Notes: generated by a model from the sequence alone, not told the origin. A stretch of DNA of 64,000 bases from Schmidtea nova (GCA_044892505.1 CM097883.1:407092001-407156000); one strand, 5' to 3'; counted from the stretch's first letter, positions 493 through 30,700 are shown. A program made the numbers and translations.

Positions 493-793
493 CAGGGATA
501 CCATCTTTGAGATTTAAATATGCGGGACAAAATTTTTACCAATTAAATGTTTACTTGAATACTTTTTTATCATTTGTCTTTGACCACAAGGACGAGAATG
601 ACGAACTGTCATCACAATTCAAAAGTCCCAGTAGGCAATTTGTACTGCACAAAATATCCCAACTCGTGAAATAAAAATCCAAATTAACCAAACCCCACCA
701 AACAAAATAAAGTGACAATTTTCGTTACAGGGCTTGTATATATCTTAGGTGTGTGGGACAATCCCACCTAGGGCGGGACAGATGGTAACCCTG
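493..793. mobile_element. hAT-like MITE (301 bp)
   Basis: TIRs CAGGGATACCATCT / AGATGGTAACCCTG (13/14 match); no coding capacity. Confidence 0.7.
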
Positions 794-1073
794 CCCTGGA
801 CAGATTAAGTTTTTACTCCACAGATTTTCCTATCTATAATAAAAATAACTAATTTCATCTTTACTTTCCCTGTGGCAATAATTATCCAGTTTATTTTCAC
901 ATTATGCTTTTTAGGCATTTTCTTTTACAATTGTCAAGAATCAGCAGTTGAAACACTAATGTCACTGAAGATATAAGATTTTGTTTGTCCTGTTTCATAA
1001 ACTTAGACATTGCCTAATAGAAATCAGCTTCATTCAATTAAATAATTCAAATTAAAAATAATTATATATTTAG

Positions 1074-3031
1074 ACAGTTTAACCGAACAGCCCGTAATCA
1101 GCCGCCAGAGCGAATCATCAAGGGTCCACGTGATCGCCGGTTTGATATCAATATTGGAGAATGTGATCGAAGTAAAAGTCAGTGACAGCATTCTAGAACG
1201 ATGCTCGAATTATGATTTCTTTTTCGAATTTATTCTTCATTTATTATCTCACACAAATGCTCTGGTTCGACAAAAGGTTTCGTTGTCTGAATCCTTTTTA
1301 TAAAAAATCTTTAAAATTTTATTTAGAGTTTATCATTATTTCGTGTCTATCTCTTTCGTAAGAAGCCTCAAATACAACAAAACCACAATCCACCGCTGGC
1401 CATAAATTTAGTCTCTCATGTCATTCATCAAAACCCAACAACGAAAGAAATATTAGCTGAAGCGGTTTCAATAATTTTTGGGCAAAATTTATTGAATATA
1501 ATTATGGACATTGATTGGGAAAATTATTCAATTTTTAACTCTGTAAGTAAATACGTTTATTTGGAATCAACAACCATTGTTTTAATGGGGGTAGCGGTAT
1601 AGGGTTACTTGAAAAATAACAAATGACAAGATTGACTTTATAGTAAGCACCGAATAATAATCTACAACAAACTTTTTAATATTCATGTTTTAACATGTGG
1701 TACAGGAAATAGATTAAGATATTTTGACTAACAAATAAAGGGGGTATTATCATGCCCATAGACAACCAAAGAGTGCTTATCTGTAAACAATACTGAATCA
1801 ATAATTCCTTGTAGACCTCAAACTGCACCAAACCAACAGAACTCACTAATATAAATTCAGAACTAAAATCAATTTGTAAACTTCAAGGAATTGTATCAAA
1901 TCAAACCGATAATTTGACGTTTTCAACAACTTTCGACGAATTAATCAATTCTAGCAATCATTTCGGTTTACAATATCAGAAAAGTGCCATTTTACTGCTA
2001 TCAATACTGAGCAACATCGACAGTGATTCAATGCTGTGGGCTTTCAAGTTATGCGGATGGCTATTTGTGGTAATTCAATCACCGAAAAATTTCATTGATT
2101 ATTGTTTCACATAGAATCATTCAACACTGCTTCAAGCTTGCTTGAAATCTGGATTCCTAGAATTTATGTGCAATTTCCCATCTTTGTTTTATAAAGAATC
2201 AATTACAAAACAAGACCCAAGATTCACAGCCTTCCTTGATTTATGCATCATAACATCGGTAAACATAGTTGCTTCGAACAGAATACAAGAATTCAAAAAA
2301 TTACTAGAGATGTGTGAAATATTGCATGGCTCCGCATTGAAAAGATCGAAACAATTAACAAAAACAGGTAGCAATTTTTTAAGATTTCAAAATAGCAAAA
2401 CTAGAAAAAAATTTATTATTTACATTTAACAAATTAGCTCATTTCAAATGTGAATTGAATTTAGGAAACCTCCACAGCACTGGAATTGTTGTGCAATACA
2501 TATTGGATAAAATACTAGTGACAATTATTGAAAGTATTTGTATTATTAATTCAAACGATCCGGCTTTCAACATCCCGATCAAAAGCACCTGCTGCATTCA
2601 GAAATTTCGTAAGTTTTTATAATTATTATAATTCTAAACACAAAGCAAATTATATCAAACTTTTATTTTATTAATATTAACACACAACAATCAATTTAAC
2701 ACAATAATATAAATAAATTTATTAAAACCTTCTAATAAACACTAATAATTTATACAACTAAGTCTTTTATTATCATTGAAAACAACTAAAAACAGTTTTG
2801 CAATAACCCAAAAGTGAATTACGAATATATGTATATATATAACAAACAAATATTGATTACTTTTACACAATACTTATAAAAACTACTAATATCATTTAAT
2901 TTAAAATTAATTTTTTTCAGTATTCAAATACAGGCTGCTTACGAATCAATTTGGATATCAGAAGAATTTAAACGAACAGCTTTCAGAAACAATTAAATCG
3001 ACAATTGGGATAATAATCAACACAGAAAAAT
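1074..3031 (+). CDS. LYST: LYST exon cluster upstream of the PIWI-bearing intron (6 exons, helical-repeat region)
   Basis: Six short exons join in phase (…[12 protein letters not shown]|[10 protein letters not shown]…; …CIQKF L FKYRLL…). The last donor is GTAAGT at 3032. Confidence 0.75.
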
Positions 3032-6000
3032 GTAAGTAATATTCTAAAAACGCCTTTTCACTCTCTCTCTCTCATTCTTTTCTTCTGTCTACAAATAAAA
3101 GAGGCGATTTCGTATTCTTTCATTAATTGCAACTGGATTCGATCCTTTATGCACTTTTCCAACTAACTCAGCCAATCTATGGGCATAATGAACTGGAACC
3201 GGAACACGAATGGTTCCCATCCAATTGAAATACAAATGAGTTAACGCATAGGTTATTTTCTGCAATTCATTTGGTGCCATTGGATCCATTGTTCCTTTTT
3301 TCGTAAGTAAACGAGTATCTTCCAACACGTTGTAATTAGTTGGGGTCGCTGTTCCTTTTGTTGTTCTTTGCGAAACGAGGAAAAATTCATAGAAATTAGG
3401 CTTGACAATTTCTTTATCAACAACCGTTCCAGGATTAGGATTATTGCCACGATTAAACAATTTAGTTCCAACTCGTTTTTTCACGATAACATAGATAATT
3501 TGCGGTACAGGAAATCCGTTCCCTTTGTAGATATTCTCTATCAACGGTTTCATCGCATCTACTTCAAAATTCTTTGTAAATTGCAATTGATTATCCCCGA
3601 CACCATCTCTAAACACCAGGATCCTTTGAGGCAATATATCGTAACGTTTTTTAAAATCTTCCAATGCCAAATTGAAATTTTTTCCCAACGTTTCATGAAA
3701 TTCCTGTCGACCTTTAGGGGAGTTTACAAAGCTCATATATTGTGTAAATGTACTATTAATTGAAAAAACCGATGCCTGAATTGATTTTTTACTAGATTTA
3801 TTATGGTAAGTATCCATTCCGACAATCATTGTTGGTCGCAATTTGATTTCCACGGTCCATGGATCATAACCGAATTTAGCAAAAATTTGCATTACGGTTT
3901 TACTGGAAACTACCTTTCTACGTTTATCATTTCTGTTAGTTCCATTACGTGTTGTTACACATTGTGTTAGAAGTCCAGTGCTCATTGTAAAAGATTTTAC
4001 CTTTGCATAAACTCTATCATCCGGTACAAATACCAACGCCATTTTAGCACAACCGCTGCCACTTCTTGCTGAATCATTCAAACACCGTTCAACATCGTTG
4101 GGTCCACAGGTATTGACCTTGCCAACTCTCGCATCAATTCTCATATTTCTTAACTCCTGTTCAACATCATTCATAAAATTCTTATATTGGAAATCATTCC
4201 TGTCAACAATAACAACATCAATTTCATGTTTTCTATCCCGTTTGATATCAAATTGCACTCGTCCGAATTTCCAATCATCCCCGATTTTCTCATTAATCTT
4301 ACTACCACCGCTAATAACATCACAAGGTGGCAGCTCTCTGCCTTCAATTTCTAGCGGCTTATTATCAATTTTCAATTGCCATTTATTACACATTCCAGTT
4401 GCAGCATCACTGTTCTTTATCCAATTACAATACGCTGGAATATCATCCAATCTTTCTCTTGGTTCTCGTTTTAACACACATCCCAAATTTTTCTGTAAAT
4501 CCATATTAGACTTTTCTTGATCTGAAAATCCACATAGAAAACACAACTCTCCGGGAATATTCAGTGTCATGTCTTTGTCTTCGGGTGCTTCCTTTTCTCG
4601 TTCTTTCTCTTTTTCCTTTTCTCCTTCGACTGCTTCTTCTCCTTCGGGTTTCTTTCTCCGTTCACGTCGCATGGGCTTTTTAACCCTAGTCAAAACAAAC
4701 GGTTGATCGCCTTGTGTCAAACGGATATTGTAACGCTCTTTAAAGTATTCAGAATAAGATAAGGTTCTTCCTCCCATCTCGAATTTTTCATCGACATTCA
4801 TTTCTTTTATCTCACTAATTCGATAAGTTTTGTTGTTATATTTCGTTATAATATCTCTCCCTATTAATTGATCAATGCTACGACGATTATAGGCTTTCAT
4901 AACTGAGTTATCATTTAAAACCCTATTAATTCGTTCAATATACAGCAACGTGGTTAATTCTCCAGTCGGTTTCGTACCTCGTTGCAACGTAGTTCCAAAT
5001 CCACCAAGAACTTTAAAACTATTTGTTTCGAAAAATGTCGGTCCAGAATTTCTAGGAACTTCATCTTTTGTTATATTTGGACTTAAAAAATATCCTTTTC
5101 CAATTCTTTCCTGACCTAACATGACTTGTAGATTGTTCAATAGAACGTTTATCATTTGATAGTATTCCTCGGTTTCCGGTAGGATTGTCGCTACTAATCT
5201 TAATGTCATTTTCTTTTCATCGTGACTGAATTCTTGGATATCCGACTCACCATGCCATTTTTCACTCGTGAACAACCGTCTACCATCGAAACAAAATGCT
5301 CCTGGAAGTTTGTTTTCCTGGCAAACTCGTACAATGAATTGCAATTTGACTTTCGGTGACAATCCGACTTGTGAGAATACAGAGTCGTACATCATGAATT
5401 TCTCAGAACGGAGAACGGAGAATTTTGTGAAATTTGATTGTAGTTTAACTGTTCTGCCGATGTTACCTGTTTTTTCGATTATATCGGCTGGTTGAAGGTT
5501 TGGCTCGACAATTCGAAATGTTCGTCGTAGGCCACCTCGGTTACCCATTTTACCACGCGTTTCACTGCCATTTGCTTCAAGTTTTGCTACTTTTATCGGT
5601 ACTAAATCACAAAAGAAGTTATAATATTAATAAAGTTTTTGTTTATTTTAGTAAAACTCACTTTCCTCCATATTTTTTTTCGAAAATTATAATATACTAT
5701 TAAAACAAATTGAATTATTTGATATTAAGTGCCTTTGTGTTTTATAAATATAAAATAAATATTTATATAAGTAATTGTAGATGAAATTGTTTTTAATTAA
5801 TTAAATTTTATATTTAAATTTAATTAAATTTTTAATTAAATTTAGGTTTCACGTCATATTATGGTGATCTTTGTGAAATTGTGGGTTTAAGTACATTATC
5901 CTATTCAATGGTTTTGATTAGCAACTGCTTGGTAATTTTTAATAGTTTTTAATTTTTACCTATTTATATTAAATTAGAATAATAAATTTATATTGCTAAA

Positions 6001-9000
6001 AATTTGACTAAGTTTTCATACTTTATACTTAGAATAATAAGAATGTAGTGTTTCTCATTTAATATTGTGATATTTGCATTTAATAGTGTTAATATTTAAT
6101 ATAATATTTAATAAATTTAGTATAAATTTTACAATAGTGGTTCTTAACCAGTAGTACGAGTGGTAACGATATGACTACCCTACATATAATAAATAAAGAT
6201 GTTGACGTAACCCTACTACCTGGACGAACCTGTGCAAACTTCTTTTTAATGTAAAGGAAATAAATCGAAATTCATTATGCTAATTTCATAAATATTATAT
6301 AATAAATAAAGTAATTAATTTCAAATGAATCTTTTGTGAGTGATAAAGGATTAAATTGCATTATCATGATTGCCTCACTCTTACAAAATGCGGATTATTA
6401 ATATTAAGTACATTGTGTAATAACATAAACTTTCAGTGCCACGAAAAAACAGGCCTTTTTGAACATGTTGTTATCAGACAAATCGACCAAAAAAACTTTT
6501 TTTAAAGTTACCGTCAGACAATTACGACTGACACAAAACTACAACTAAAACAGTGTAATGTATCATAAAAACCACAGTGTACTAAAATATTTTCGTATTT
6601 TCTCCGAGAAATAAAATACAGTCAGTCACTTTTGTTAACTTGATGGCCGCTAATTTAGAAATATCTGTATCTTAGCATATCTTATTACTAATTAAAATTT
6701 TAAAAAATCGATTCTTGTAAATTTTATCTTGAAAACGAATCTGATAGATTTAATGATGTTTAGTGAGTCTTTTTATTTGGACCTGACAAGTGATTTATCT
6801 ACGTCCTAACGTTGGGTATTAAATATAATCAGGTGATAATATTATATCAACCCCTACATAAAAATTCTATTTTTGGATATTTAGATTGAGAAATTATTGA
6901 ATTTTAGTTGTATTAATAAAGAAAAATTTAAACGAAGATAATTATTTAAATTTTCTAATGATTTCTGTTAATAAGTAAATAATTCTATTTCCTACACCAT
7001 CGATCAACTTTTTCATTTCAATTTCGTTTTCCTTCATTTATAGTTAGAGATCACAGGCTCCCGATCTTTTTTAGAATCATTTCCGCATTTTACGAAGGCC
7101 AAGTGATCTGTGACCAGGAAACAGAGACATATGGAAACAGAGACATATGGAAACAGAGTTAGGAAAGGGTACAATTAGATTCGAAATGCAAAATGTGCAA
7201 ATTTGAGGGGAAAATTAATAGGTGGTTAATTTATCGAAATTGAATGTGGAAAACGGAACAGGTATAGATTACCTAATGGCGAAGAACATAATGATTAGGA
7301 ATCTGTCAGAAAATGTTCAGAAAGGGTCGAAAAGCATGCAAATGCATAAAAACAGAAAATCGTTAATTTATTAATTAGTTGGGTAATGTAAAACATGAGC
7401 TAATGGGAAACCCGATCCGATGGAGAACCCATGAGATAAATAAAACAGGAGCTCGGCAAACAAAGAGAGTAAACAAAGTGGATTTCGAAAAAGCCATTAT
7501 CTCGACATTATGAGTAATGGGAGTAAATAAAATTGGTTTTTACGAAAGGATAACAGAAGAGAGTTATTAATCACTATTAGCTCTCAATATTCAAGAAAAC
7601 CGATTGTCAACGCGTTGCCAGTCAGAGGAAATTGGACCAAAACCTACTTAATCAAAATGAGTATTCTAGTAAAAAAAGAAACTCAGAATTGAAAACAATC
7701 GGCATTTTGCCTTAGTTAGGGAGAAGAAACAGAGATTAGGCTAAAGGTATTATAGTTGGAATGAATATGGAAACAAAGCGATTAGCGAAACGATCAATTA
7801 AAAAGACTAAAGAAAAAGAGTAAGAAATTTAGGAAGAGCTGAATTAAAGGAAAACCAAATTGTTATAAAGCGCACAAGGTCAAGACATCCCACCCTGGAG
7901 CTCGATCGAATAATTAGAACGCTGTATTATTGATGTGTATTGTAAAAAGATTGTATTAATTTAAAACAAATATACGTTGGTAGTGTTATTAATTTTTGAT
8001 TTGTTTGAACACGAGGAGTCAGACGCCGACGATTATTATCTGATTTAATTAAACCCAACACATGGAAGATGTTTGAACTTCATATCTTCTCTTGACCACG
8101 TCTTTCGTAAAACCTTTATCCTGGCCTGTTTCCATTTATCCGGACAAACAATATTTTACATAACTTTACCCAATTCAATTTGATCGGAAATCCCTCTTTA
8201 TAAAATTACTGAATTGTAAAGAAAGTTTCAAATTTGCCCATAGTTTTGAACGAAAACATTTTATGTGAGCAATTCCTAGTTTTTTCTCTAGTAAGATACC
8301 AGAAGGAGGAGTATGATTTTAATAGTGTAACACCGGAAATATATCTGCGTATTTATATCTTTCTAACTAAAATTTATTAATTTATATTTATCAGGCTTGT
8401 AATCAAACTCCTGATGAGTTTTCTGTTTTTCTGGGATGCAAGGAGGCAACCAAAAGTCATCTAGGAGATTTACTGATCTGTCTCACTCAGTCAAAATTGA
8501 GCATCCATTTGAGATTGGAAGCAGTGAAATGTGTTTTTAAATTTCATAATTTTGACAGAGTAGTTCGGTATTGTCTACTGGGGAATTCTTCGGTTGGGTT
8601 TTCAGGTGATTTGATTAAAGAAATTAAATTGTCAACATTTCAGGGATCATTGTGTTTGATTCTCAATGTCAAACAAATTCTCGAGCATGTTAGACGAACC
8701 GGAAACCAAACCGACGAGTTTGTCAAAAGTCTTTCTCAGTTGTTGTTTGCTATCAGTCCAGATTTCTCCGTTGAAGCTCTAACCGAAGACAACAGAAATC
8801 TTTGGATAAAAGAGAATGAATCCAAACTTAAGACCTATAAAGAGAAATTCAAAAGTACATTGAACACTTGGAATGTAAGTTAAATATAATTACATACCCA
8901 TTGCTATTTTACATTTTCCTCTTCAATACATTGCAGAAGGTTGTAAGAAAATAATCTGAACAGGATAGGGTAAAAGTTGCCTTTTTGAATTTAAAGTCTT

Positions 9001-12000
9001 GTTTTTCATAAGTTGTTTCCTTTATATCTTTAACTTTTCAATGACTGACCATCTTGTTGCAAGACAGAAAAGACAGAAAAGTTGTATTTCCCCTTTTCAA
9101 TATTATTCCAATATCACTTAATCCTTTTACCAAATCAGCTTTTAGAAGACCCGGCCAGTGGTCGCTGACCGGGATTCATGTTGGCTAGATAAACTTCGTT
9201 TATCCAGAAGTATCGGATAAACCAATACAAATAACCGACCTTATAAATGGAGACTTAGGACCTAAACTATAACCCATCGAAAATGTAGTCACACTGGTAC
9301 ATTTTACTTTCCATAATAGAATCTCAGTCATTACACAAGGTGTCACTTATTAGAGGCTTAGATCGCATATGATCCTTAAATCTTTTGTTTAGAAAGGGAC
9401 TCCCGCCTAAATCACCGAAAAAGTCAAATTTAAGAAGAATTTGAAAACCCAAATAATTGGGATCCCAGATAACCGAGGATATTCTGTGTTATAATCAGCT
9501 TAATGTATTTTACGCGCAAAATAATTATCGGGCCGCAGTTCCTTTCAATGTTTATAAATAATAACAATGCTAAATTTCTTTTTTTAGCAAAATGCTGACA
9601 GAAGATTTAATGAAGTCTCGATTCAAATGAAAAACTCTTACAACAATTATCGGACATATGCAAGAAAGAATCTACAGCACGAGTACGTTTCCAATATTAA
9701 AAACCAAAGAGCATCAGAATTCTATAGAAGATTATCGTGGAAAATACTAATTGCTACCTTTACCCAAGAGAAGTAATTAGAAAAAATTATTAACAGTCAA
9801 CAAAAATTAATGAACCTTCCAATTACAGTGAGATCTGGGATGATTCAAATAAGAAGTCACAAATCTACAGACTGGATCCCATTGAAGGTCCATCTAGAAT
9901 CAGGCGAAGAATGATCAAGACTACTCACAAGATTGACAATAAATATTTCGATCCAAAATCAACAGCTAGAAATGGTAAAATATCTCTTTATGTTGAATCT
10001 TTTGATTTTTGAAACTAATTTTATAAAATATATTAGTGAATTGTTAGAAATATCTATTGGAAATTTATTACAAAGATTAATAACAATTGATAAAGGCAGT
10101 GCTGAAAATTTGTGGTTACATTTAATAATTCTATCTATATACTATCATCCAATAAAAAACGTTATTTTCGATCAATGGTGAACAAAAATTAGATTAAATA
10201 TCTAACCGATAATATATCGCCCGCGTAACGCTCATCAAACTCCCTATAATAAAGTTCTATAATATAAAATACGCTCACTGTGTGTTAGCGGTGTACTAAC
10301 AATGAATAAATACTTCATTATCATGTAAAATCCTGCAGACAAGTAGGATAGAAAAATAAAATTAATCACAAAAAGCAGCAAATGTATGTTTTTTTTCTGA
10401 CAATGAAAACGTTGAAAATAGATTGCATACATGCATACATTTTATAATATTTGTTGCATTTCGTGTGTTAATTTGTGTGTATTATAAGGATATTATTCAT
10501 CGTTAGCACACCACTAACACACAGGTGAGTGTATTCAACTTCTATTTTATAATTTAATTTTATATCATAAGGTTTTAATGAGCGTTATACGGTCTAATAG
10601 TAAAATTTAAGGACTTGAAAGTAATTTTGCTTAATTAATATTTTTCTATTTACCTTTATTTCTGTTCATTAAGTCCACTCTCAAGTATTATAATCACTAA
10701 TTACTTATATAGGACGTACTCAGATTAGTTACCCTGTCAATTATATGGGCTTTTGATCAACCATTTTCCTTCTTTAGCCTTTCTGATATTTCTTTAATTA
10801 GAGGGTTAACAAACTAACGACTCGCGACCTAAATGATGTTTTTAGCATCTTGCGGCGATAAAAACAGAAACAATTATAAATTCTAAATGCTTTATGTAAG
10901 CTATAACATCAGAAATGCTACGAATTATCTGTAACCGATAGTATTTCAGATAAAATTGTGATTAAGAGTTACGTGCAGACTAATAGAAAATGGAAAGTTC
11001 AATGAGTCAATTCATATTCAGCACTAGAACAGCAAACACCTATTACAAGGTAACTCGTAGCTGGTGCCCAAAACAAGCCTTTAAGTACGAATTAACTCGT
11101 AGTCGACAGCAAACGTGTTAATTGTACTTTATAATCTTCACAATTTAAAACACTTACTCTTCATTATAATCTTTATTCAAATCACAAAACTAAATGTCGA
11201 ATATTTAAACAACTAATTATATAAATAATCGACCCAGCTCTTATATTATGCTCATTTACAGTTCAATATAAAAATACTAACGGTGAAAGCTTGACATTTC
11301 TGTTTGATTCCACATATCAGGTTGATAAAATTGTTTATGAAAACCCGATCGACTGTCAACTGTTAAAATGCATCGAGGATATCCAGATCTCTTGTCCGTG
11401 TATATTGGTCTGCGAATCCGGTCATTTCAAAGGAGAATTTTTTGTCGGAAATTGGAGAATTGGATTCTTAGAAGACCGAGTCAACAATCTGTACAGCGAA
11501 TATGATGAAGTTGTGACATTTTTTTCTTTTTTTCTTTTTACTTTTTGATTTAGTTGCCTAATTATTTGAAGGATTTTGGTTTCATAAATTGGCACTTAAA
11601 TGAAATAGAGTGGGTGCTTAAGAGACGATTCAAGTTAAGAGATTACGCCTTGGAAATGATTATGAAGGACGGCAGAAATTGTCTCATTGCAATGAATTCG
11701 ACCCTGGTTTTACATTTTTGCCAATTGATTTTGATATTGTATTGGTCTTTCAGGAAAGAGACAGAATCCTTAGTTTCATAGAAAATATTCTCCCACCAAA
11801 TGCCAATAGGAAGCCACGTCTTATTGACATACAGCGCGAATGGGCCGACGGGAAAATGAGCAATTTTGATTATCTTACATTTCTCAACACAGCCGCTGGA
11901 AGGAGCTACAATGACATTATGCAATATCCAGTGTTTCCTTTCATTTTGACGGTAACTTCTAATGCTATTTGATTCTAGGGCATATCAGGAGGGTATTAAC

Positions 12001-15000
12001 AATATACAACTGAAAAATCTCCAACATGTTTACAATTTTACAGTAGTCAAACCATTGAAAAGATTACAATAAAAATTAAATTTCTCAGCCAGCTAAAAAA
12101 ACTCATTATTTACATAGAAGTTAGTCAGACAAGGTAAATAAGATCAGCACGGCCGTCCTAAGAAATTCGGCGCTCGTGGGCTACTTAAAATAATGCGCGC
12201 TTCTTCGTAAGAAAATTCACAGAATAGCAAACGGGAGCCGGGTGTGCTGAAAAGTTAAACAAAAGTGAGAACTAAAAAAATCAATTTATTACCCTATATA
12301 CAAAACACAAAATTGAATTAAATTAAATTAAAACAACCTTTAAGAACAAAAACAAACCTTAACGCAAACAAGAAACAAGAGTAACTTTTATATTTATTTT
12401 CCTAGCTTTTGCTTTAGCAAACTAATAAAATTAAAGATGAATTTTTATAAAATTAATAATAACAGAAAACATATACATCGCAAATAAAAATTGCCGCCCC
12501 AAAAGGCTTGCGCCCTGGGGCTCTAGGCCATTTAGCTCTGTGATTATGGTGGCCCTGGTGGCATTGAAATACATTTTAGTACAGAAATATTTTAAGCAAT
12601 ACTATTGAATACAAACGTTTTTCAATTTATCTAGTAAAACAAGTTCTACGAAAACCGCTATTTGTATATAATTTTATATATTATTAAACTACTTTCAAAA
12701 GTAAGTAGTATAATAATTTAAAAATAATATTATTTTCAAGTTTATTATTATTATTATTATTATTATTTTTTAATAATTTTTATTATTACCATAAATATAA
12801 AATATCTCTATCTGTCCATATGTCTGCACTAACCCTAACCCTAAATCCCTGCAAAAATGCCCGACGGACCCTTATATGGACGGGTATAATTTAGAAATTT
12901 TAAGATACGCAACAAAACATTTTTAAATCTACAAATAAGAATTGTATTACTATGCCCATTTATTATTTTATAGAAGAGTTGTGGAAAATTTAGAAAATTG
13001 AACTTTTTTCGGAACCCTCTATATTAATTTTCGATATCCCACCATTCTAATTATGCCTTAACTTTTCCGTTTAAGTCATTTAAGCCTGTTTTATTTCTCC
13101 TAGGATTACACCAGTTCAACTCTTGATCTCACAAAGGAATCAGCGTTCAGAGATCTCAGTAAACCAATAAGCATTCAAAATGCACCTTTACGGGAAAAGG
13201 TCATCAACTGTTTTGCAGAGAAAGCTGAGGAGTATCAGAGACAATTACGAATGCTACAGACAAGCAGTAATACTGATGAAATGTCAGTTTGGGCAGTACC
13301 ACCTTACCATTATTCTTCCCTCTATTCCAACAGCGCCACAGTATTGTACTATATGATTCGAATTCCTCCATTTACTCAAAAGTTTATCCAGTTTCAAGGT
13401 AATGAACATCTTTTATAAGCAAAAATAATTTTGGGGATAATTCTTTTAATGGATAAAAGAGGTTAGACGTTTGATATCGAATGGACAAGATTATTTTTAA
13501 TTGAGCTATAAATTGAAGGAGGCATTAAGGTAGGTGTAAGGCAACACGTAGCAACACGTAGCGACACTTGGCAATACTAAATACTAAAGTTTTTTTCTGT
13601 CGGTTTTGACATGTTTTATTCTACGTTTTAAAAACCAGTAACAAAACAAAGAATATTCAAAAATATATAATCCATTATTTAAAATGACCCCGTTAACCTT
13701 TCTACAATTTCGACACCCAACTTTAACCTCTCCAAATGTCTCAAACTAGCGCCTGTGCAGAAAGTATTCTATCGACTGTAAAAGGTTATATTCTGAAGGT
13801 TGACGGTCAAAGCTATACATCAGCTGTGGTAAAACTGTAATTATACAAAACTAACTCTTTTGCTGTAAGTCAAACATTGTACATGGGACACAGTTGTTCA
13901 GGATTTTGTAAAGGAAAACAGTAAATACATCCTAGGACTTCCTTAGCTAAACTTTATCGAACAGCATCCTCGTACATACGAAAAACTAAGAGTCACCAAC
14001 AATTCATGCCTACTGGAAACCACAACAGATTCTTGCAAATTCATCAATGACATTATGAATTACACCATAACCTAAAATATTTTAAATGTTTTTTTTGACA
14101 AATTTAAATAGAGACTAAAATTCTATTTTAAGCGCCCTGTACAAGAGACGCCCATTGCTTTGCATCCATCGTTTCCAGCTAAAGTCGACTCTGATTATAA
14201 TACAAAATAAATGTATATACCTTACTTTTCGTAATTTGGTAACTTATACTTTTATTTTGTATTAAAATTCATCTAAAATATATATATATATATATATATA
14301 TTATCTTTTTTCACCTTTGATCTTTTTTTATTATTATTATCAATAATTCTCATAATGACTATAGATCAAAATTTTTTTTTTATATAAACAATAACACAAT
14401 ATTTCGGCACAGCCTTTATCAAGTGTGTATTATATATATATAAATTATCACAATTACCAAAATACACAAATAAATAAAATATTAACACTATCGAATGAAA
14501 TACTAACACTAATAAATGAAATATTAACACTATCGAATGAAATACTAACACTAATAAATGAAATATTAACTCTATCGAATGAAATACTAACACTAATAAA
14601 TGAAATATTAACACTATCGAATGAAATACTAACACTAATAAATGAAATATTAACTCTATCGAATGAAATATTAACACTATGATAATAAATATTAAATATT
14701 AACACTGATATTAAATATTAACACTATCTTATGCGGGTGTCATACTATCATATGAGAAACCCTACAAACAGCTGATTATTAGCTTAGTTTTGTCGAATGA
14801 ACCCGATGATAGCCTTTTATATAATCTCTGCAGAAAGAAATTTGATGATATTTTCATAATATTAAGCATTTTCCGATTTGATTGACCTTGTCTTCCAATA
14901 TACCATTAAACATGCAATAAAAATTGAAATTTGAGTCTTCTTTTCTTTTGCCGATATGCGGGTGTTAGCAAGCGATTTGATTGGTTCTTAATGGATGACA

Positions 15001-18000
15001 TCGTTACTACATGCCAAACAAGTGTATACGGATCAAAATATAGATCAAAATATAAAAGAGATCGAAAATCTCTACATTGCGTCATATACGATTGAGCATT
15101 ATGCTCCAGAAATTATTTTGGTGTTGTCGCATGAAAATCATACAAAAGTTGTTGCCAATACATAATGTTACCATTTGCATCTTACAGACGGGGAGTTCGA
15201 CAGACCAGATAGGATGTTTCACACGATGGCTTCTGCTTGGCATTTGTCGACGTCCTCTACATCCTGTATGAAAGAAATCATTCCGGAATTCTTTTATCTA
15301 CCGGAATTATTTATCAATGGCCAAGATTTTAGTTTTGGAGAAAGACTCAACGGAACGAAAGTGGATGATGTGATTTTGCCAGAGTATTTAGTATTCATGT
15401 AATTTAGTCTTATTATTATTTTTTTACCTAGCTGGTGCTCCGGAGACGCAAGACTATTCTGTTTGATTCATCGGGCGGCTTTAGAGAGTCCCTATGTGTC
15501 CAACCAATTGAACCACTGGGTCGATTTGATATTCGGATATAAGCAAACCGGGAAAGCTGCACTGGAGGCGATCAACCTTTTTCATCCCTATGTAAAAAAT
15601 TTATTACAAATTCAAATGTGTTTGAAAACTTTGATGCCAGACCTACTACAAAGCCATTTCTCCCGACGAAATAACAGAGGAAATTCGTAGATTTGCTGTT
15701 GAGCAAATGATTGAAAATTACGGGCAAATTCCAAAACAGCTTTTTATTAATAAATCCTTTCCAGCGAAAAAGATAAATTGGAGAAATGTCAAAACTTTTG
15801 CTCCAAGAAATATTCAATTTTCTCTCTCCACAGACAAGGGATATCTAGAAACTGAACAAATGAAGGATTCTTTTGATAGCAATTATGAATCCATTAAAAG
15901 TCTTTCAAAAGATAGGAAATGCTTAACCGTATTAAATAGCGTTGTTGGCATAGAATGGGGAGACTGGATCGGCAGTCCGAACAATCCCCAGGTGAGTTCC
16001 TTNNNNNNNNNNNNNNNNNNNNNNNNNNNNNNNNNNNNNNNNNNNNNNNNNNNNNNNNNNNNNNNNNNNNNNNNNNNNNNNNNNNNNNNNNNNNNNNNNN
16101 NNNNNNNNNNNNNNNNNNNNNNNNNNNNNNNNNNNNNNNNNNNNNNNNNNNNNNNNNNNNNNNNNNNTGGTAAGACTAAAGATCAAAATTTCTTTAAATA
16201 AGTACACAATATTTCGGCACAGCCTTTATTAAGTGTGTATTTATATTGTAAACACACTTGATAAAGGCTGTGCCGAAATATTGTGTACTTATTTAAAGAA
16301 ATTTTGATCTATAGTCATTCATTATGGGAATTATAGATATTAATAATAAAAAAAGATCAAATCAANNNNNNNNNNNNNNNNNNNNNNNNNNNNNNNNNNN
16401 NNNNNNNNNNNNNNNNNNNNNNNNNNNNNNNNNNNNNNNNNNNNNNNNNNNNNNNNNNNNNNNNNNNNNNNNNNNNNNNNNNNNNNNNNNNNNNNNNNNN
16501 NNNNNNNNNNNNNNNNNNNNNNNNNNNNNNNNNNNNNNNNTAACAAAATAAGCCTTTGCTGCAAAAACAATTGATTAAGTCAGAAAATTGTTATTGCAGC
16601 AAATGCTTATTTTGTTACTTATTTATTAATTTATTTAATACTTAATGCTGCTACCAAGGAATCATCATTTTATACTATTATTATTATTATTACTACTTAG
16701 ACGTTTATCAACGACATTCATAAAAAGAGAGAAAATATCATCGGAAAGCTATTTCTCCCACCAACATCTAAAATGACAAATAAAAGAACTCTACAAATGC
16801 TTGTGATCCCAGAATTATCAAATGTGCTCATGCTACCAACCACTGAAGATAGCAGTCAAGTTTTCATCAAATTTTCGTTAGCCACGGTTAGTTGTTTTTT
16901 AGTGTAATAGTTATTTGGAATTTTAAATTCGTCATATTTTCCCCATTGAAAATGTCTCCGGCATAGCAAAAAGTTTTTACAAAGTCATAATATATAATAA
17001 AAACGAATAGAAATTTTGATTTTTCATATAAAGACTATAGATCAAAATTGTTTTGTTTAAAAAAGGCTTTACCGAAAAATCGTGTTCTTTAAAAAACAAT
17101 TTTATATAAAAAAATGAAAATTTCTGAAATAGAAAGTAAGAGGTCAAAGGTGAAGAAAACAACATGTAAAAGAATTGAAATTTGTATTTTTTGATACATA
17201 ATCAAATTTTATTTAAACAGAGCTTCAAAAATTTTTAAAAAAATTATTTCTTCGACAATTACTTCTGTTTCATTAGATGAGAAGGGTCGCAGTTCCGATT
17301 CCAGTTCATTTTGGATATAGGTTAAATAGGTTTGGAAATATAAATTAAAGATTAAATTAAAACAAAAATAACTTTGGTTAATTTATGTTTGATGACCTTG
17401 GTTTACATTTAACTCCCTAGTGATGATAAGAAAGGTCAAATATATATATATATATATATGTGTATGTGTGTGTGTTACAGTTAAAGTAATAAATCCAGAT
17501 ATTATTTATAATATCCTCGTATTTTGGTAAATATAAATAATAAGTAGAGATTATTATATCTTCCGGTAAGTATTAATAATTACCCGTATGGATTGGTAAA
17601 TGTAATTAAAACCATTTCTTTTGATTTTCTTATATTTGTTATTAAAACTATGACAAAAAAAAACAAAAACTAAAAAGTTAAAGTTATATTTTTATGGTTA
17701 AATTAATCATTTATTTCTACGAAATTAATTTATTTAATTTAATAGGAACAACTTTTATGGCATTTGGAATTACAGTTGATATTTGACTTTGTACATTTGC
17801 AGCGATTTGAATTATCATCGAATTTACACTTGCAGTATTGGAATCCTTGACCACCTAGATTTGAATTCAATCGAGCACATTCTCTCAAACTTATTTCATT
17901 ATTTGGAACTTCTTCAATTGAAAGAAAAGTTTCTTTGCAAATATTGAATTCATTTCTTTCATGCAGTTGGTTCAAAAGTCCATATTTAGTTCCTAGTTGG

Positions 18001-21000
18001 TATTGACTATCATTTTGAGTTGATATTATAATAGCTATAATATTCCGACTATCTGATTTGCCTCTATCTACGTCGGTAATCCTTATGCGTACATTTTCTC
18101 CTACTTTTGCAACTTGAAATTTTACTTTCGAAATGGATAACATTTTATCAGCCTTCTTTTTTAGTGCCCGTTTGGCAGAGTCCAGCTTCAAAAATATTTA
18201 TTACTTAAACTACTGTAATTAAATCCACATTATTATTTCAAAATATTACATTTACCGAAGATGGGTGGGAATTATTAATAATTAGCGGCTTATGTGATAA
18301 ATTAAATAAATCATGTCTAAATTAATCACTTTTACATTTCTATTTGTTTAGTATTAATAATGACCGGCTATTATTAATAATAACCAATTCATTATTTTAA
18401 CCTAAACCATTTCTAAATTTGGTCTGAGAAAAATGTGAAGAAAAATCGAGGCATGCATACATACACATTAGTGACATGTAGCCAAAATCAAAGGACTGCT
18501 AGATAAGCGGATAAGAAATACATATAGATAAAAAAATGTCACGTGAACGTGACACACACACATATACATATAATAACCATATGATTAAGAATTACATTAA
18601 ACCTTCAATTCAGAATAAACGGCGAGTCCAAGTAGATTCCATGAATTACGGAAATACTAGCAATGAAATCCAATTAGAATCTTTGGGAAGTTTCCTTGTA
18701 TCGACAGGATCGGGTCAAGGAATCGTTTCAAGTATTGCTGTTTCTCAAAGATCCGGCCGAGTGTTTTTTGGAATGGATTCGGGTCTTATTATAGTTTATC
18801 AAGGAAATATGTTCAAATACTCCCAAATACGAGTATTGCGTTTTAAAATCTACAAAATCTGATAATAAATTCATTTCAGCCGTTTGTGGACAATTTCAAT
18901 CATCACAAGAAAACTTTATTAGGACACAAAACTTCCGTTGTTTTTCTTCAGCTGTGTGAATCGTTCGCAGTTCTTGCCTCGTGTGATAATCAAACGAATG
19001 TCGCCATTTGGGATTCCCAAACGTTACAACTCTTGCATTTCATTGACTGGCAGTCGGTGAAATATATTCAGTCGTCGAAAAAGTTCAAATTATCTTCAAG
19101 TGGCAGTGAGTATTTTAGTCTTTATAAACTAGTTTTAAAAGTGTTTTTTTCCTGCTACTCTGCGTGTCAAATATATACTGCTGATAAATGGACACTTGAA
19201 AAGAGGCACTGCCGAAAATTTGGGTTGTATATGGATATAATTAGTTCAGTGTCTTAAAATGTAAATATGTAATTGAAAAAAATGATCAAAAGCGATGATT
19301 ATTAAAGATGTAAATAAGGTGAATAGGGTCAATAAGGTCAATAGGGTGAATAAGATGAATAGGGTGTAAAAGTGAATAGGGTGAATAGGATGAATATGGT
19401 GTAATAGTGAATAGGATGAATAGGGTGAATAGGGTGATTAGGATTAATATGATATATAAGGTGAATAGGATAAATAGGATGTATATGGTGAATAGAGTGA
19501 ATAGGGTGAACATGGTGTATATAGTGAATAAGGAGAATAGGGTAAATAGGGTGAATAGGATGAATATGATATATAAGGTGAATAAGATGAATAGGGTGTA
19601 TATAGTGAATAGGGTGAATAGGATGGATAGGGTATGTGAGGTTATTTAGACATGATTACTAACGAGCATTAAAATTAAATAATTGTTTGGAGATAGTAAA
19701 AATAAGTTTTAAATGTTTTATTAAAAAATTTATATAGATATAATAATAATTGAAGTAAAATTTTATAAAAAATAATTTTACATTAAAATAGTTTAATTTA
19801 ATTTAAAAAGTTTTATCTTTAAAAACTAATAAATTTGAATAAAAATTTTATAAATAGATTTTAAATAAGTATTTTAAATAAAAATGCTCTTTTTCAAATT
19901 TGTTTAAATATCCTCAAAGAGAATAACATTTTCATTTATTAAATAATTTTTTTTGGATACTTTCAAAATCTGATCTAAACAAAGATGTTTTAACAACATC
20001 TAATAGGGTAAATAGAGTGAATAGGGTGAATAAGGTTTATATAGTGAATAGGGAGAGTATGATATATAAGGTGAATAGAGTAAATAGTTTGAATAAGGTG
20101 ATATGAAAAGATCTTTTCTGACTTTATAAACTAATAAACGTTACTCAAAATAGTTCATCATGAGAACTGGCTGCACACAAATCTATAATCGAGTGCTTTT
20201 CAAATGTTGCTGCCTTTAGTGGTATCTGGAAAATAAACAAAAAATATGTTATATACCATAAGAAGGATTTTATTATTAAATACATTTTTGTTGATATTCG
20301 GCTCTTCGCTTCAGCCAGAAATCACACTTTTTAAAATTAATATATTAATGTTTAATTTTACATGAGGCTCCAATTCTCCAAGCCTAATTACAAGGGTTTT
20401 TCTCTTTCAGCTCTTGTTTCTGATCTGATTTTTGGTACGCCAAAATTCAATTTTCCCACCTGGTGGTACAATAAACATAAAGTTTGAAAACCGCTGCTAT
20501 AATCTATTTATTATTAATTAGTTCGTTGATAATGATTAGCATGCGCACAGTGGCGTATTCAAAGGGGGGCTATCCTTAGTAATCGACCAAAGACTAGTTA
20601 TAAGTATTGCTTAACTAACAATTGAATAGTTATGGCTGTGAATGTGTAAAGGGAGTTGATAAAGTTATGAATAAGCTGGCTACAGGTTCTAGAAGATTAT
20701 GATACCGAATATAAGTTGTGCGGTAAATGCGGACTGGAGGTTTAGTCATATCTCGTAGAATAATTGGAAATTACGCGGTGCACCCAATAAGTGCTTAAAC
20801 TCGACAAGAAATAAGCAACCGATTTTATTCAAACTTTCAGCAATATGTAAAAGTTTATTTCTCAATGTAAGCTTCACCAGCTTCTACGCATTTTCGTTAT
20901 CGTGACAACAAGTTCAAAATGTCTTTTTTATAAATGGTTTTTGGCTATGAAATCGACTAATCCGTCCCATACTGCTGCAAATCACTGGCAAAATTAAATA

Positions 21001-22000
21001 ACTTTCCTCAAAATTATTTTTTCAGTTGTCCGAAGAGGTGAAAATCACTAGGGGTGACATCGGGGCAGGACAGAAGGCGAGATACCAGAGAGAATCCACA
21101 TATCCAAATATTCGATGTGTCCGGTGTGATGTGTAATTTGGAATGTTGTCATGCATTAGCCAGAGTTCATTATTTCCTCTTTTCTGTCACTTTTTCTTGC
21201 ATCCTTTATGAATTGTACATAATAATCAAAATGATTTTGACATCTGATGTAGCGAAATCCATTGTGAAAAAGCCTTTCATGTCCCAAAAAGATTGTGATC
21301 GTCCTACATTTCTTGTTAGATGTGCCAGTTCTCATTTTCAGTGATCGTTTCTCCTTTGGCATCTACTTTTCGACAGATTCCAGTTTAGTTTCAGGTATGT
21401 ATAGGCTCAGATGAGTCTCATGTTCTGTGATTATGTGTTTCAAAAAGGCATCACCAAGTTTTTCAAAGATTTCCAAATTTTTCTGACAATAATCAAATCA
21501 CCTTTGTTGCATTCCATCCGTAAGAAACCGTGAACACAATTTCTTGTAAGCCCATTCATTCAGCAAATTATGCAACATACTTTTGGAGATATTTAGACGT
21601 TGAGCCCGGTCTCTCGTTACAATGCAACTGTCTGTCATGATGATTTTTGCTAGCATTTCTTTTTTCTCATTTCCAACTTCCACAGGTTTGCCAGGCTTTT
21701 CCAAATCAAAAACACTAGTGAGTCAACTTTTAAAATTCCGAATCTAGTTGTAATTGGTTGCTTTACAAGGGCACCCACTCTAGTAAACATCCTGCACATG
21801 TGCAATAATTTCTTGGCTACTAGTTTTCTTCAAAACGTTTCGAAATTCAACGTTATCTGACATTTTCTGACGCAATATTGAAATAGCGTAATTTCTTTTT
21901 CAAACAAAAATAGCCTAGAAAAACAAAAACACTTTCATTACCCATACATATTTATGTATAATTGCTTGCAATATCTATTTTATGAAGGAATAATTTCTTG

Positions 22001-22039
<39 letters not shown>

Positions 22040-25000
22040 GGTGGTCCTTAATTTTGAAAAGTTGAAATCCTGTGCTCCCACCTCATAGAATTGTTTTTTA
22101 TTATGACAGGATGCTGTGCTAATTTTATTTTTATTTTTGGATGATGTTTAGAGGTCGCCCAAGCTTTGGAATTGGAAATTCATCAAAATCGCTGCAAATG
22201 AGCTTCTAGAAACTATTTTTTATTTTCTCACTACTTATTTTGGTCAGTTCTGTTAGTTAGTTGATCCCAAACAATTAATTTAACCTCTAATAAATAATCT
22301 TTGTTGATCAATAATACTGTCTGATTAAGAATTTGCAGTTTTATTAAGTTTTCTATGAAATGGCGTCATCTTTTTGGTGAGTAAACTTTTTCATGTGTTG
22401 TATGTTTTAGCTGCTGCTTTGCCATTCAGAACATTCAGTTATTATGCACTATTTGCCATTTTTTAGGCCAGAAAGTAAACATTCCACATGTAGACACAGT
22501 GACACACCAGTGTTAGTGTAATATTGTATTGTATGATATGTTGTTGTTGTGATGTAGTGAAGAATTTGATATAACAACACGAAGTCAAACTGCAGTTTAT
22601 CTACTGGGTCAACCCACTACTGTGCTTTCTACTCTCAGACTTGCATCAAATGGTGAAGCATTGGGTTTGTTTTTCCATCACCACCTAACCCATGGTCTGC
22701 AGACACGACAGGCATCAGCACATGTGATCGAACAGGTGACTGGAATTTGGAACAAGGCCCGCATACCGACATGTCGCAAAGACCATGCAATCACCAAGCT
22801 GGAGCAACTATTCAAAGATTAGACACAGCTAAAAAAGCACAAAGATCGCAAGACAGAGCTCCATGTTGCCAGAGAAGATGAGTTTTGCGCCAAAATGAAG
22901 AATCTTTTTGACATTGCACATGCCGACGCCCTAACGACTATGAAGATCGAGGAAGATAGAGAATTTCTGCTGGCACAGCGAGAACCAGGACGACGAGGTT
23001 ACCTTGGATTAGTTGATAGAGCATCAGCTGAAAAGGAAGAGAGAAAAGCAGTCAGAATAAACTTGGAGAGGAAGAGACGTGAAAGAGCAGAAAGCGAGGC
23101 ATCCGTTAGCACAATGGTTGCAGGATTTGGCAGCAGTAGTGAAGATGACAATAAACCTGAATCGGACACAGATAAGCCTGCTGAGTTCTCATCACCTCGC
23201 CGTAAGAAAAGCAGAGCAGCAACAAATGTGATTACCCCAAAGTTAGCAGCTGCCTTGGATCGTACCAAGTTGAGTGACAGAAAGGCTACGTTTGTCATTG
23301 CTGCGGCAGCTCAGAGCCTTGGGCATGATATTGATGAACTCAATATAAATCGGAGTTCTATAAAGCGTCACCGCGAGAAATACAGAGCTGAAATGGCAGC
23401 TGCATTAAAGGAAGATTTGTCTAGTGATGTTCCTTTGGTGGTACATTGGGATGGCAAACTAATGGTCGATCTCACTGGGAAGGATCACGTTGATCGCCTC
23501 CCTATAATTGTGACCGGCTTTGGGGTGTGTCAGCTATTGAAGGTGAGCAAGATGTCTGGTGGAACAGGTGAGAACCAGTCATCTGCAGTGGTCCAGGCAC
23601 TGAATGAGTGGAATGTGCAGGATCGTATGGTAGGATTGTGCTTTGATACAACTAGTTCCAACACTGGTATCCACAACGGTGCCTGTGTTCTGATAGAACA
23701 GAAGCTAGGCAAGGACTTACTACACTTTGCCTGTCGCCACCACATTATGGAACTGTTGGCAGGAGCCGAATTTACAGTAAGTCTTGCACCATCATCTGCT
23801 CCTGAAGTCCTTCTGTTCAAGAGATTTCAACAAAAGTGGTCAATCGTCGACCACAGTAACTACCAGACGGGAGCTAATTTGAATGAAATACCTGACGTGG
23901 TGAAGAACGAAGTAATGGAATTTGCACACAGGCAGCTGCTTCGTGACAACGTCCGAGAAGACTACAGAGAATTCATTGAATTATCTATCATATTTCTTGG
24001 TGGCTTACCCCATCGTGGGATTCATTTTATGGCACCTGGTGCAATGCACCATGCGAGATGGATGTCGAAAGTGATCTACTCACTCAAAGTGTGGATGTTT
24101 CGCTCACAATTCAAGCTCACATCGTTCGAGGAGAAAGGACTTCTCCACATGTGCATCTTTGCAGTGGTTATATACCTCAAGGCCTGGTTCACTGCACCAC
24201 TGGCTTCCAGTGCGCCTCGAAATGATCTGCAACTGCTTCAAGATTTGCACAATTACAAGCGTTACAATGAGAAAATCTCTATCGCAACATCCAAAAAACT
24301 TGAGCATCATCTTTGGTATTTGTCGGAAGATTTAGTGGGTCTTGCCTTCTTCGATCCCGATGTACCGGTCGATACAAAACGTCAAATGGTGAAAGCACTG
24401 AATTACTGTAGCAAGGATGCCGTCGACAAAGTACTTCTACCAAAAGGTCTGAAACGCATCACAATGTCTGCAAGCAGTGCATGCAACTACAGTTTGGAGG
24501 ATTTCATAACTGTCAGATCTCAGGAATTCTTTGATAAGCTCCATATTTCTCAAGACTTCTTGAATTACGATCCTGACACTTGGGAAACTCGACAGGAGTA
24601 CACAGATGGCATGTTGATCGTGTCTAAGCTACTAGTCGCCAATGATAATGCAGAACGTGGAGTTGCCCTTGTTCAGGAGCTAAACAAGTGTATCACATAC
24701 GATGAGGACCAGTTTCAGTTTCTGCTGCAAGTTGTGGCAGACCATCGTCGTCAGTATGCAACCTGTCAGAAGTCGTTATTACATTGACTTAGTTGCGGAA
24801 TGCGGAGTGCGGACATCGTCTTTGGTTGGACCGACTGACACTGACAGTCTAGAACATTTATTCCTATAAATAAATCTTAACAATAGATTCTGTACATTAC
24901 GGAGTTTCATATTTCCTAGTCATTTAATAACATAATAAAACGTTACCAATTTCAGTTTAGTAATAAAAATACTATACTATGCTCAAGTCAAATTTTTTGG

Positions 25001-25435
25001 TCATTTTAATAAATTGTGAGCTGTTGGGCGACCTCTAAACATTATCTGATCATTAAAAAAATTTGCACAGTATCTTATGGCATCAAATGGAACATTTTAA
25101 AAGGGTGGGAGACATCCAATTGTGAGAAAAAAATATTACCATTGGTCTAAGGACCACCCTAATATATATATATATATATATATTTAATCATAATTATCTT
25201 TTTGTTTAACCTTTGATCTTTTTTTATTATTAATATCAATAATTCCCACAATGGATGACTATAGATCAAAATTTCTTTAAATAAGTACACCTTAACTTGA
25301 TAAAGGCTGTGCCGAAATATCATGTACTTATTTAAAGAAATTTTGATCTATAGTCATCCATTATGGGAATTATTGATATTAATAATATATATTAATAATA
25401 TATTAATATTAATAATATATAATAATATTATTGAT

Positions 25436-25468
<33 letters not shown>

Positions 25469-28699: not shown

Positions 28700-30700
28700 G
28701 AAAAGCTAACCAATCTCACACGGAGGCCGACACTGTCAAATTCTTGGAAACTTTTATTTTCTGTTCAATAGCGAGAAATGGTGACTAAATCAAATCAAAA
28801 TTATGATTACGGATATATAATTGCTCTGGAGGGAAATTCTAGACTTTTCACTATCATCCAGCGCACTCATCAGAAAGAATCTCAATAGCCTGATTGATCT
28901 ATTTGACAAAAACAAAAATAAACCGTTTGATAAATTCACTTCAACACTTTCTCAGTTATTTGATGTCACTAGTGTCAATGGAGAATGGAAAAGCACGGAG
29001 GATAAAGAGCTCTACCAGAGGCAAGTTAAAAGTGGAGAAAAGATTGGTTATTCAATGGTCAAACAAGACCCTTTGGAATCAATCCACTCAAGAAAATGAA
29101 TCCGACTATCAAAACTCAACCTCAAGCCAACTCTTCTCAATTGCAACCCACACAAACACATAAAACTGTCTCAGAATCTTCGGATTCTGAAACCTCTGCT
29201 TCTTCAACCGAGTCACCAACCTGTTCTTCCACGTCATCTTCTCCTGAATGCAAACCGAAATACCAAAGAGCAAGCACAACAACAGAGGGTTTACTAGTAG
29301 TGAAAAACAACATTTCTACACATAAAGCACATGACGTTCTTGCAAACATTGCTCAATGGTGTCATGATGTGCCGGTTCCAAGTCAGGCGGGTGTCTGGAA
29401 ACGAGTAATCTCTGAAGGACAGAATGTCGAAATCAAAATTGTTCAAAAACTTCACAGCAAAGATCCCTATTGTCTATAGTTTGATGGTAAACGACAGCAA
29501 GGGAAGAGTATCAAGTAGTTCTGCTGAAAAATATGACAACCGAAATCAAACTCGGTATTCTTAAATGTGAGAGTGGTTCTGCTGCGGCCATTCACAAGGA
29601 ACTACATTAGCTAACTGATGAATAATATGCTTGGAAAGTATTTGCATGATAATCTGCGACACGACCGCAGTAAATATTAGTCGTTTGCACGGGATCATGT
29701 CTTGAGCAAGGGCTTTCAGAAGCCACAATACATTGGTTGTCAGCACCATGTACTCGACCTCCCTCCGAATCATGTCATGAATTTTCTTTTTCAAGAGCCT
29801 ACGAGCAGACCGGAACTCAATTATTTCTTCATTGACAAATTAACAGAAAACTGTGCCTCTCTTCAGGCTGATTACCGTCTCATTGCGACAGATGATGTTA
29901 CCACAGACGAGAACCCTGGATGGCGAGATGATTTTAAATTCTTATATGAACTATGTCAGGCATATCTTTATCACAAAACAACTTCACATTGGCATCGAAC
30001 CGGCTGGAAGATACTCCTAAATTTACACCAAGCAAGATGGAACTCACGTGCGATATATGCATGTTATAGCATTATTTCTGATACTAGAGTGGCGCAACTT
30101 CCTCGCTCCAGCATGCTTACCTCACTCAACAATATAAAATGCAAGAAGGCAATTAAGTGTTTAAAGACGCATTGGTCAGTCGAGGAGTCATTAATTGACA
30201 TTCCCAGATCTAAACAAATTGATGAACGTGCTGTAAAACTGATGGAGGAACTTCATGTGAAATCGAGAAAAATTGAATTTTTGAAACGGAAGTTCCTAGG
30301 AAAAAAATATTTTTTAAACATTTCTTGTACTAACTGTTCTGTATTTTATTTCTTAATAAAAGTTGTTTATTTATTACTGTTACTTTTTTTGAAAGAAGCT
30401 AAAGTAAACTTGTCCTTTTTGAAAAAAAATATTTCTTCACTTTCTTCTTCCGAAAAAAAGGGGGACTTTTTTAAAAAAAATTCAAAATGCAATTGATATT
30501 CTTAAATTACACATAAACTTTCTTCGATTGCATGTGGCTTCATAAAGATTTTTTGTTATTACCCTACTGTGCATTGTTATTAAAACATAAGTCTTCAGAA
30601 TTATTATATAAAAATTGTCTAAAAATGGCTGCTTAAACTTTTTTCATTCGCGACCCCATTTATGATCGAGTTTTTGGCAACCCCATATAAATATAAAAGA
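28700..30700 (+). mobile_element. Degenerate hAT(m)-like transposon
   Basis: Frameshifted ORFs with YIGCQHHVLD, WRDDFKFLYEL, LHQARWNSRAIY and ERAVKLME, which parallel the CRHH/ARW/NAER motifs of the intact element. Confidence 0.62.

Follow-up and report, generated by a model that had tools for sequence, protein, structure and literature searches.

The planarian PIWI gene smedwi-2 quite probably lies, in Schmidtea nova, on the opposite strand between coding exons of a single larger host gene, the orthologue of the lysosomal-trafficking regulator LYST. The locus is found in a stretch of 64,000 nucleotides (nt) of the S. nova assembly (GCA_044892505.1, CM097883.1:407092001-407156000; hereafter the window), and all coordinates given below are positions in this window, read 5′ to 3′ on one strand. 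The smedwi-2 coding sequence (3089-5671, minus strand) is flanked by LYST-homologous exons on the plus strand, which end at 3031 on one side and start at 8292 or 8395 on the other (Table 1). An initial annotation of the window had proposed a PIWI gene nested antisense in a LYST intron. The identities of the two genes, their opposite strands, the LYST exons on both sides, and their compatible phase all agree with this proposal, except that containment of the whole gene probably fails at its 3′ untranslated region (UTR).

The minus-strand gene is smedwi-2

A minus-strand open reading frame (ORF) of 819 amino acids (aa), running from 5548 to 3089, carries both PAZ and Piwi domains in the same polypeptide (Pfam, 1.7e-15 and 1.5e-64, respectively). 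Its product is 98% identical over 820 aa to SMEDWI-2 of S. mediterranea (UniProt PIWI2_SCHMD), 75% identical to PIWIL_DUGJA of Dugesia japonica (i.e. the DjPiwiB of the initial annotation), and ~54% identical to SMEDWI-1. PIWI2_SCHMD has 21 more N-terminal residues than this ORF, and these are encoded by an ATG and 7 further nt (5671-5662), followed by a 60-nt intron and then by the large exon that begins at 5601. The spliced product is 840 aa long and matches PIWI2_SCHMD at 820 of 841 aligned positions, and its N-terminus agrees across the intron junction with the UniProt sequence, which derives from complementary DNA (cDNA). The minus-strand gene is, as initially annotated, of the SMEDWI-2/DjPiwiB type, and it is nearly but not fully intronless; an intronless PIWI gene is ruled out by the 60-nt intron. 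Exact look-ups of the 819-aa ORF and of DjPiwiB returned no record.

The genomic copy differs from PIWI2_SCHMD at about 20 positions, including a Lys/Glu-rich stretch that is 8 residues longer and 1 missing Val. These differences probably represent strain or allele variation, or errors in the older cDNA sequence. Given the identity to SMEDWI-2, its catalytic slicer residues and nuclear localisation are likely to be conserved here. SMEDWI-2 is reportedly the nuclear PIWI of planarians, and its gene ranks with the most widely used and most highly expressed of the neoblast-related genes that planarian research relies on.

The host is a predicted LYST orthologue

Judged by its domains and by the order of its profile matches, the plus-strand host is a predicted LYST orthologue. 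From 11.2 kilobases (kb) on, stop-free plus-strand pieces encode a PH_BEACH domain (PF14844, 8.4e-9), and then 4 consecutive parts of the BEACH domain (PF02138, profile positions 2-237 of 276 on 4 successive exon pieces). Further pieces, at 18.8-19.3 and 27.0-27.4 kb, are WD40-like, and their WD40-type Pfam matches are weak. To place these and other pieces, a LYST profile of ~3,650 positions was built from the orthologues of 31 species and searched against 1,937 pieces of the window (Z = 1,937). The C-terminal WD40 region matches this profile at positions 3443-3486 (1.4e-7) and 3515-3581 (3.4e-11), and the profile matches found on the plus strand across 1.3-27.4 kb are colinear without exception (2772-2815, PH, BEACH to 3315, and WD40 to 3618).

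The best full-length relatives (2,950-3,821 aa), from Mizuhopecten, Haliotis, Babylonia, Patiria, and Taenia solium, are named lysosomal-trafficking regulator by their source. As in LYST, their BEACH domain is found at ~2,900-3,300 in the 4 proteins of 3,600-3,800 aa and at 2,300-2,700 in the 2,950-aa Taenia protein. The assignment to LYST as opposed to NBEA, LRBA, or WDFY rests on these closest full-length relatives and on the LYST-only profile, with its pre-BEACH matches at 2087-2310, 2566-2713, and 2772-2815. An exhaustive search with the first BEACH exon also returned a 584-aa S. mediterranea fragment with 97% identity, spanning only 9.6-13.4 kb. The host named in the initial annotation is thus borne out by PH_BEACH, Beach, and WD40 domains, by LYST-annotated closest relatives, and by colinear profile matches.

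The host runs left to right from before position 1 to ~27.4 kb in many short exons. The window opens mid-gene, with ~2,000 LYST residues upstream of it and the last ~1,550 of the ~3,650 profile positions inside. Assembly gaps (N) are present at 16003-16167 and 16366-16540, directly after the last BEACH piece (15635-16002), and the LYST model is incomplete there.

LYST exons on both sides of smedwi-2

To the left of smedwi-2, 6 predicted exons (A-F) were chained by hand from AG/GT sites and phase. All are of the GT-AG type with compatible phases, are separated by introns of 45-312 nt, and together encode 402 aa without a stop. The spliced A-F model scores 27.1 bits against the LYST profile (full-sequence E = 3.8e-8) and aligns at positions 2087-2198 and 2214-2310. 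As a control, 300 residue shuffles of each LYST segment were scored against the same profile, and for exons A-F none of the 300 reached the observed score (maximum 3.7 bits). Only profiles and the spliced model reached these exons: tblastn with single LYST proteins found no match upstream of 9,800, and Pfam found none in the A-F region.

On the other side of smedwi-2, exon 8395-8874 scores 7.8 bits, compared with a maximum of 5.1 bits among its 300 shuffles. Given the colinear matches on either side, smedwi-2 lies between LYST coding segments at approximately profile positions 2430 and 2550. We infer that the exons on either side of smedwi-2 are joined in one LYST messenger RNA (mRNA).

The host junction and competing explanations

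The way in which the 2 sides would be joined depends on a putative LYST microexon of 35 nt. Splicing 3031 directly to 8395 breaks the frame and brings in a stop after 2 codons, whereas the path from 3031 through 8292-8326 to 8395-8874 is open and in frame. Accordingly worded, the in-phase splice across a ~5.26-kb intron that had first been proposed (3031 to 8292/8395) would work by way of 8292 as a putative microexon, and is lost for the direct route to 8395. The most likely intron model is 3032-8291, which rests on the putative microexon.

Several observations weigh against a single host gene with this intron. The microexon was picked because it fits, and 123 in-phase open intermediate exons are possible in its place, 6 of which have acceptable splice signals. 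A transcript left unspliced at the 3031 donor would run into a stop at 3037-3039, and the reading frame could formally end there. The 4 sequencing runs found, all from one study and none recorded as RNA, are DNA, as indicated by a contig depth that is even over exons and introns, and the host junction is therefore a prediction from sequence. Taken alone, the homology of exon 8395-8874 is weak (E ~0.02-0.03), and a word search with this exon found no match. Lastly, no independent contig bridges the high-copy repeat in the proposed intron (7194-8031 unspanned).

Some of these points would be met if smedwi-2 is nested as proposed but the intron is misdrawn, with a different or additional intermediate exon (e.g. 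3531-3640 or 4355-4494, antisense in the smedwi-2 coding sequence) or an alternative acceptor. Apart from the 6 frame-keeping candidates, this view is favored by the planarian model being ~80 residues shorter than Haliotis LYST between the 2 matched blocks. However, 8292-8326 has the best pyrimidine tract of the 6, with the other 5 all located antisense within the smedwi-2 coding sequence, and its 68-nt downstream intron is typical of a gene with introns of 45-312 nt. Moreover, no colinear LYST profile match was found among the plus-strand pieces of 3032-8291, and we regard a misdrawn intron as rather unlikely. The stop within 2 codons past the 3031 donor, the out-of-frame direct splice, and a run search that returned only DNA could also point to 2 plus-strand genes—i.e. 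a LYST-like N-terminal/middle gene ending at 3037-3039 and a PH-BEACH-WD40 gene, in which case smedwi-2 would be intergenic, converging on the first of them and diverging from the second. Yet a separate BEACH gene cannot start at 8292-8326 or in the 160-aa exon 8395-8874, because neither has a methionine, and in all 31 LYST orthologues the pre-BEACH and BEACH regions are found in one polypeptide. In addition, the exon F donor is a consensus GTAAGT, and stops just inside introns are expected in AT-rich DNA. A split into 2 genes is, in our judgment, improbable.

It could finally be argued that the repeat at 7100-8100 fused 2 unrelated regions during assembly, and that smedwi-2 is not truly flanked by BEACH exons. 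Depth over this repeat is ~12-55x that of its flanks, and it is here that independent contigs are missing. Elsewhere, contigs of the 4 DNA runs tile ~765-7194 and 8031-8690 at single-copy depth, and because the first of these tilings is continuous, LYST exons A-F and smedwi-2 are truly adjacent. A mis-assembly in the intron, named at the outset as a way in which the arrangement could be wrong, is countered by these contigs on both sides of the repeat but not across it. A false join at the repeat is nonetheless unlikely because the LYST homology beyond it continues with the correct order, strand, and spacing, which would be an unlikely coincidence; also, short unique pieces within the repeat region (7386-7480, 7588-7707, and 7794-7888) have single-copy depth in the DNA runs. 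We consider an assembly artefact extremely improbable, and retain a single LYST gene that flanks smedwi-2 on both sides. No second copy of the repeat was found within the window, and no long ORF was found in the repeat.

Predicted antisense overlap at the 3′ end of smedwi-2

Only 57 nt separate the smedwi-2 stop codon from the LYST exon F donor. A minus-strand scan for 11 common poly(A) hexamer variants found none between this stop and 2900, and the first candidates, ATTAAA and AATAAA, are 189 and 318 nt from the stop, respectively, both beyond exon F. Because the first hexamers are beyond exon F, the smedwi-2 3′ UTR most likely runs antisense through the whole exon and both of its splice sites. 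The smedwi-2 transcript is thus probably not wholly intronic, and probably overlaps LYST exon F in antisense. The statement that the intron contains the whole PIWI gene consequently applies to the coding sequence (3089-5671), but probably not to the 3′ UTR.

A (CT)n microsatellite is present at 3056-3075, between the smedwi-2 stop and the exon F donor. It is length-polymorphic, with an extra CT at 3060 in 1 of the 4 DNA runs.

A possible retro-origin for smedwi-2

A single smedwi-2 exon holds 2,513 nt of coding sequence, whereas the 6 neighboring LYST exons average ~200 nt (111-255 nt). In other animals, PIWI genes contain many introns. This contrast in introns, together with the antisense intronic position, fits a retrogene origin or intron loss by retro-conversion. 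Searches for retro-marks were negative—i.e. no A-tract was seen by eye in the minus strand past the candidate poly(A) signals, and no direct repeat in 5600-8400 marks the 5′ flank as a target-site duplication would, although no repeat search spanned both flanks. An old event would be expected to have lost such marks. We see the case as about evenly balanced for smedwi-2 having arrived as, or having been remodelled by, a reverse-transcribed copy.

Features of the locus

Table 1. Features of the smedwi-2/LYST locus, ordered by window position; LYST exons are predictions.
Feature	Position	Strand	Details
LYST exon A	1074-1276	+	AG/GT, in phase with exon B; in the spliced model matching profile 2087-2198
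LYST exon B	1327-1542	+	AG/GTAAGT; alone matches profile 2146-2198, E 0.02 among 1,937 pieces
LYST exon C	1815-2069	+	AG/GTAATT, phase 0; with exon D, profile 2214-2310
LYST exon D	2115-2367	+	AG/GTAGCA; preceded by a 45-nt intron
LYST exon E	2438-2608	+	AG/GTAAGT, in phase
First poly(A)-signal hexamers past the smedwi-2 stop	2766-2900	-	ATTAAA 2900-2895, AATAAA 2771-2766; hexamer scan
LYST exon F, last host exon before smedwi-2	2921-3031	+	AG acceptor, GTAAGT donor, no stop, ends in phase 1
Proposed LYST intron, 5,260 nt	3032-8291	+	Contains smedwi-2 coding sequence, its promoter side, and the high-copy repeat; 3′ boundary hinges on the microexon
smedwi-2 coding exon 2, 2,513 nt	3089-5601	-	PAZ and Piwi; stop codon 3091-3089
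Sole smedwi-2 intron, 60 nt	5602-5661	-	GTGAGT...TTTAG (GT-AG); junction confirmed by cDNA-derived UniProt N-terminus
smedwi-2 coding exon 1, 10 nt	5662-5671	-	ATG + 7 nt; transcription start and 5′ UTR further right
High-copy repeat in proposed intron	7100-8100		Word depth ~320-1,460 vs ~27 in flanks; short-read contigs break
Putative LYST microexon, 35 nt	8292-8326	+	Pyrimidine tract 13/15, donor GTAACA, 68-nt downstream intron; restores frame
LYST exon, 160 aa, no methionine	8395-8874	+	AG/GTAAGT; profile 2566-2713, E ~0.02-0.03
Open frame with LYST pre-PH exon	9794-10009	+	Profile 2772-2815, E 7e-8; tblastn matches of annotated LYSTs
PH-BEACH and BEACH exons	11225-16002	+	Open frames 11225-11545, 11554-11778, 11622-11969, 13104-13415, 15166-15399, 15403-15687, 15635-16002; Pfam PH_BEACH/Beach, profile
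WD40 exons	18847-27435	+	18847-19254, 27002-27397, 27283-27435; profile 3443-3618; long introns between, with transposon-like ORFs

Rfam and transfer RNA scans of 1-30,000 found no match, and hence no hidden RNA gene in the proposed intron. Other LYST introns hold tandem minisatellite-like repeats with long repetitive open frames, at 14395-14679 ('NEILTL...') and 19389-19646 ('NRVNRV...'), which are probably non-coding. An ORF of 654 aa (22823-24784) is found in a late LYST intron, in a region of ~41% G+C compared with a background of ~31%, and another of 271 aa (29681-30493) is located downstream of LYST. Neither has a Pfam match. The two show weak similarity (24% identity, E 9e-4) and have C-x-H-H and H-A-R-W motifs in common; they look like members of an unclassified transposon protein family.

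Outside the window, a complete gene of the piwi-1/DjPiwiA type, 80% identical to SMEDWI-1, was found on a Logan contig (L001:575-3020, run SRR8558719). Its reading frame is almost uninterrupted, apart from a frame change near 877-880; the contig could be RNA or genomic DNA, and says nothing on intron content.

Discussion

Under the arrangement we favor, LYST, a gene for a giant BEACH-domain protein, would be transcribed left to right through the locus, with smedwi-2 on the other strand between host exon F and the next host exons (most likely 8292-8326, followed by 8395-8874). The smedwi-2 promoter would be within the host intron, both LYST sides would be spliced into one mRNA, and the smedwi-2 3′ UTR would run antisense through exon 2921-3031. 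Functional coupling, in the form of polymerase collision, sense-antisense RNA pairing, or the mis-assignment of reads in unstranded RNA sequencing (RNA-seq), would follow from this geometry. To go further and propose transcriptional interference or coupled chromatin between smedwi-2 and LYST would be speculation. Animals have many opposite-strand nested genes, and because of this no special regulation is predicted from the arrangement alone. A bolder view is that LYST pre-mRNA, with antisense smedwi-2, may feed a loop of PIWI-interacting or small interfering RNA, or of nuclear double-stranded RNA (dsRNA), by which the nuclear PIWI tunes its own gene or LYST; a milder version is that smedwi-2 is a retrogene whose place in the LYST intron became fixed in the ancestor of triclads. 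We hold this view to be very improbable.

The arrangement has practical consequences for work on either gene. Unstranded or 3′-end-counted RNA-seq can credit smedwi-2 reads to LYST, and peaks from assays for transposase-accessible chromatin or histone marks at 5.7-6.2 kb are those of the smedwi-2 promoter though they are within the LYST intron. Likewise, probes or dsRNA that include the smedwi-2 3′ UTR may match one of the LYST coding exons in antisense. The presence of a PIWI gene with hardly any introns in a host that has many also hints at a retro-origin for the triclad nuclear PIWI. The current understanding of PIWI and LYST function is unchanged by these points.

Among the papers searched, we found none that links smedwi-2 with LYST, nesting, or intronlessness, and none that pairs planarians with 'lysosomal trafficking regulator'. 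The arrangement is not discussed in a comparative planarian genome paper of 2024 or in an annotation preprint of 2025, in line with the early remark that no description of it was known; it should nevertheless be visible in public annotation browsers. The smedwi-2/LYST pair is a new and practically useful example of a well-known arrangement, and not a new mechanism.

At the protein level, both genes resemble their known relatives. The smedwi-2 product shares its PAZ and Piwi domains with SMEDWI-2 and PIWIL_DUGJA (98% and 75% identity, respectively). Like LYST/Beige of molluscs, echinoderms, and Taenia, the predicted host combines C-terminal PH-BEACH, BEACH, and WD40 domains with a LYST-specific pre-BEACH region, all colinear, but unlike them its N-terminal region is very divergent.

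At the locus level, a case of interference is mouse H13/Mcts2, in which a gene is nested in a host intron and transcriptional interference reportedly drives intronic polyadenylation (PMC13309782). The smedwi-2/LYST pair would share with it an active nested promoter in a host intron, and the kind of interference first proposed for this locus is the same. However, neither intronic polyadenylation of LYST nor an epigenetic switch is indicated by any evidence at smedwi-2/LYST, and a retro-origin for smedwi-2 is only a possibility. Nested pairs have also been described in mammals (PMC11694760), and opposite-strand examples include Drosophila 2mit, located in intron 11 of timeless2 (PMC3786989), and an opposite nested gene pair studied in C. 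elegans (PMC12274878). As in such animal opposite-strand pairs, smedwi-2 would be a complete coding sequence with its own promoter between coding exons of a larger, many-exon host. It would differ from purely intronic nested genes in that only 57 nt lie between its stop and a host exon that its 3′ UTR probably overlaps, which likely makes smedwi-2 and LYST a cis-natural antisense pair as well.

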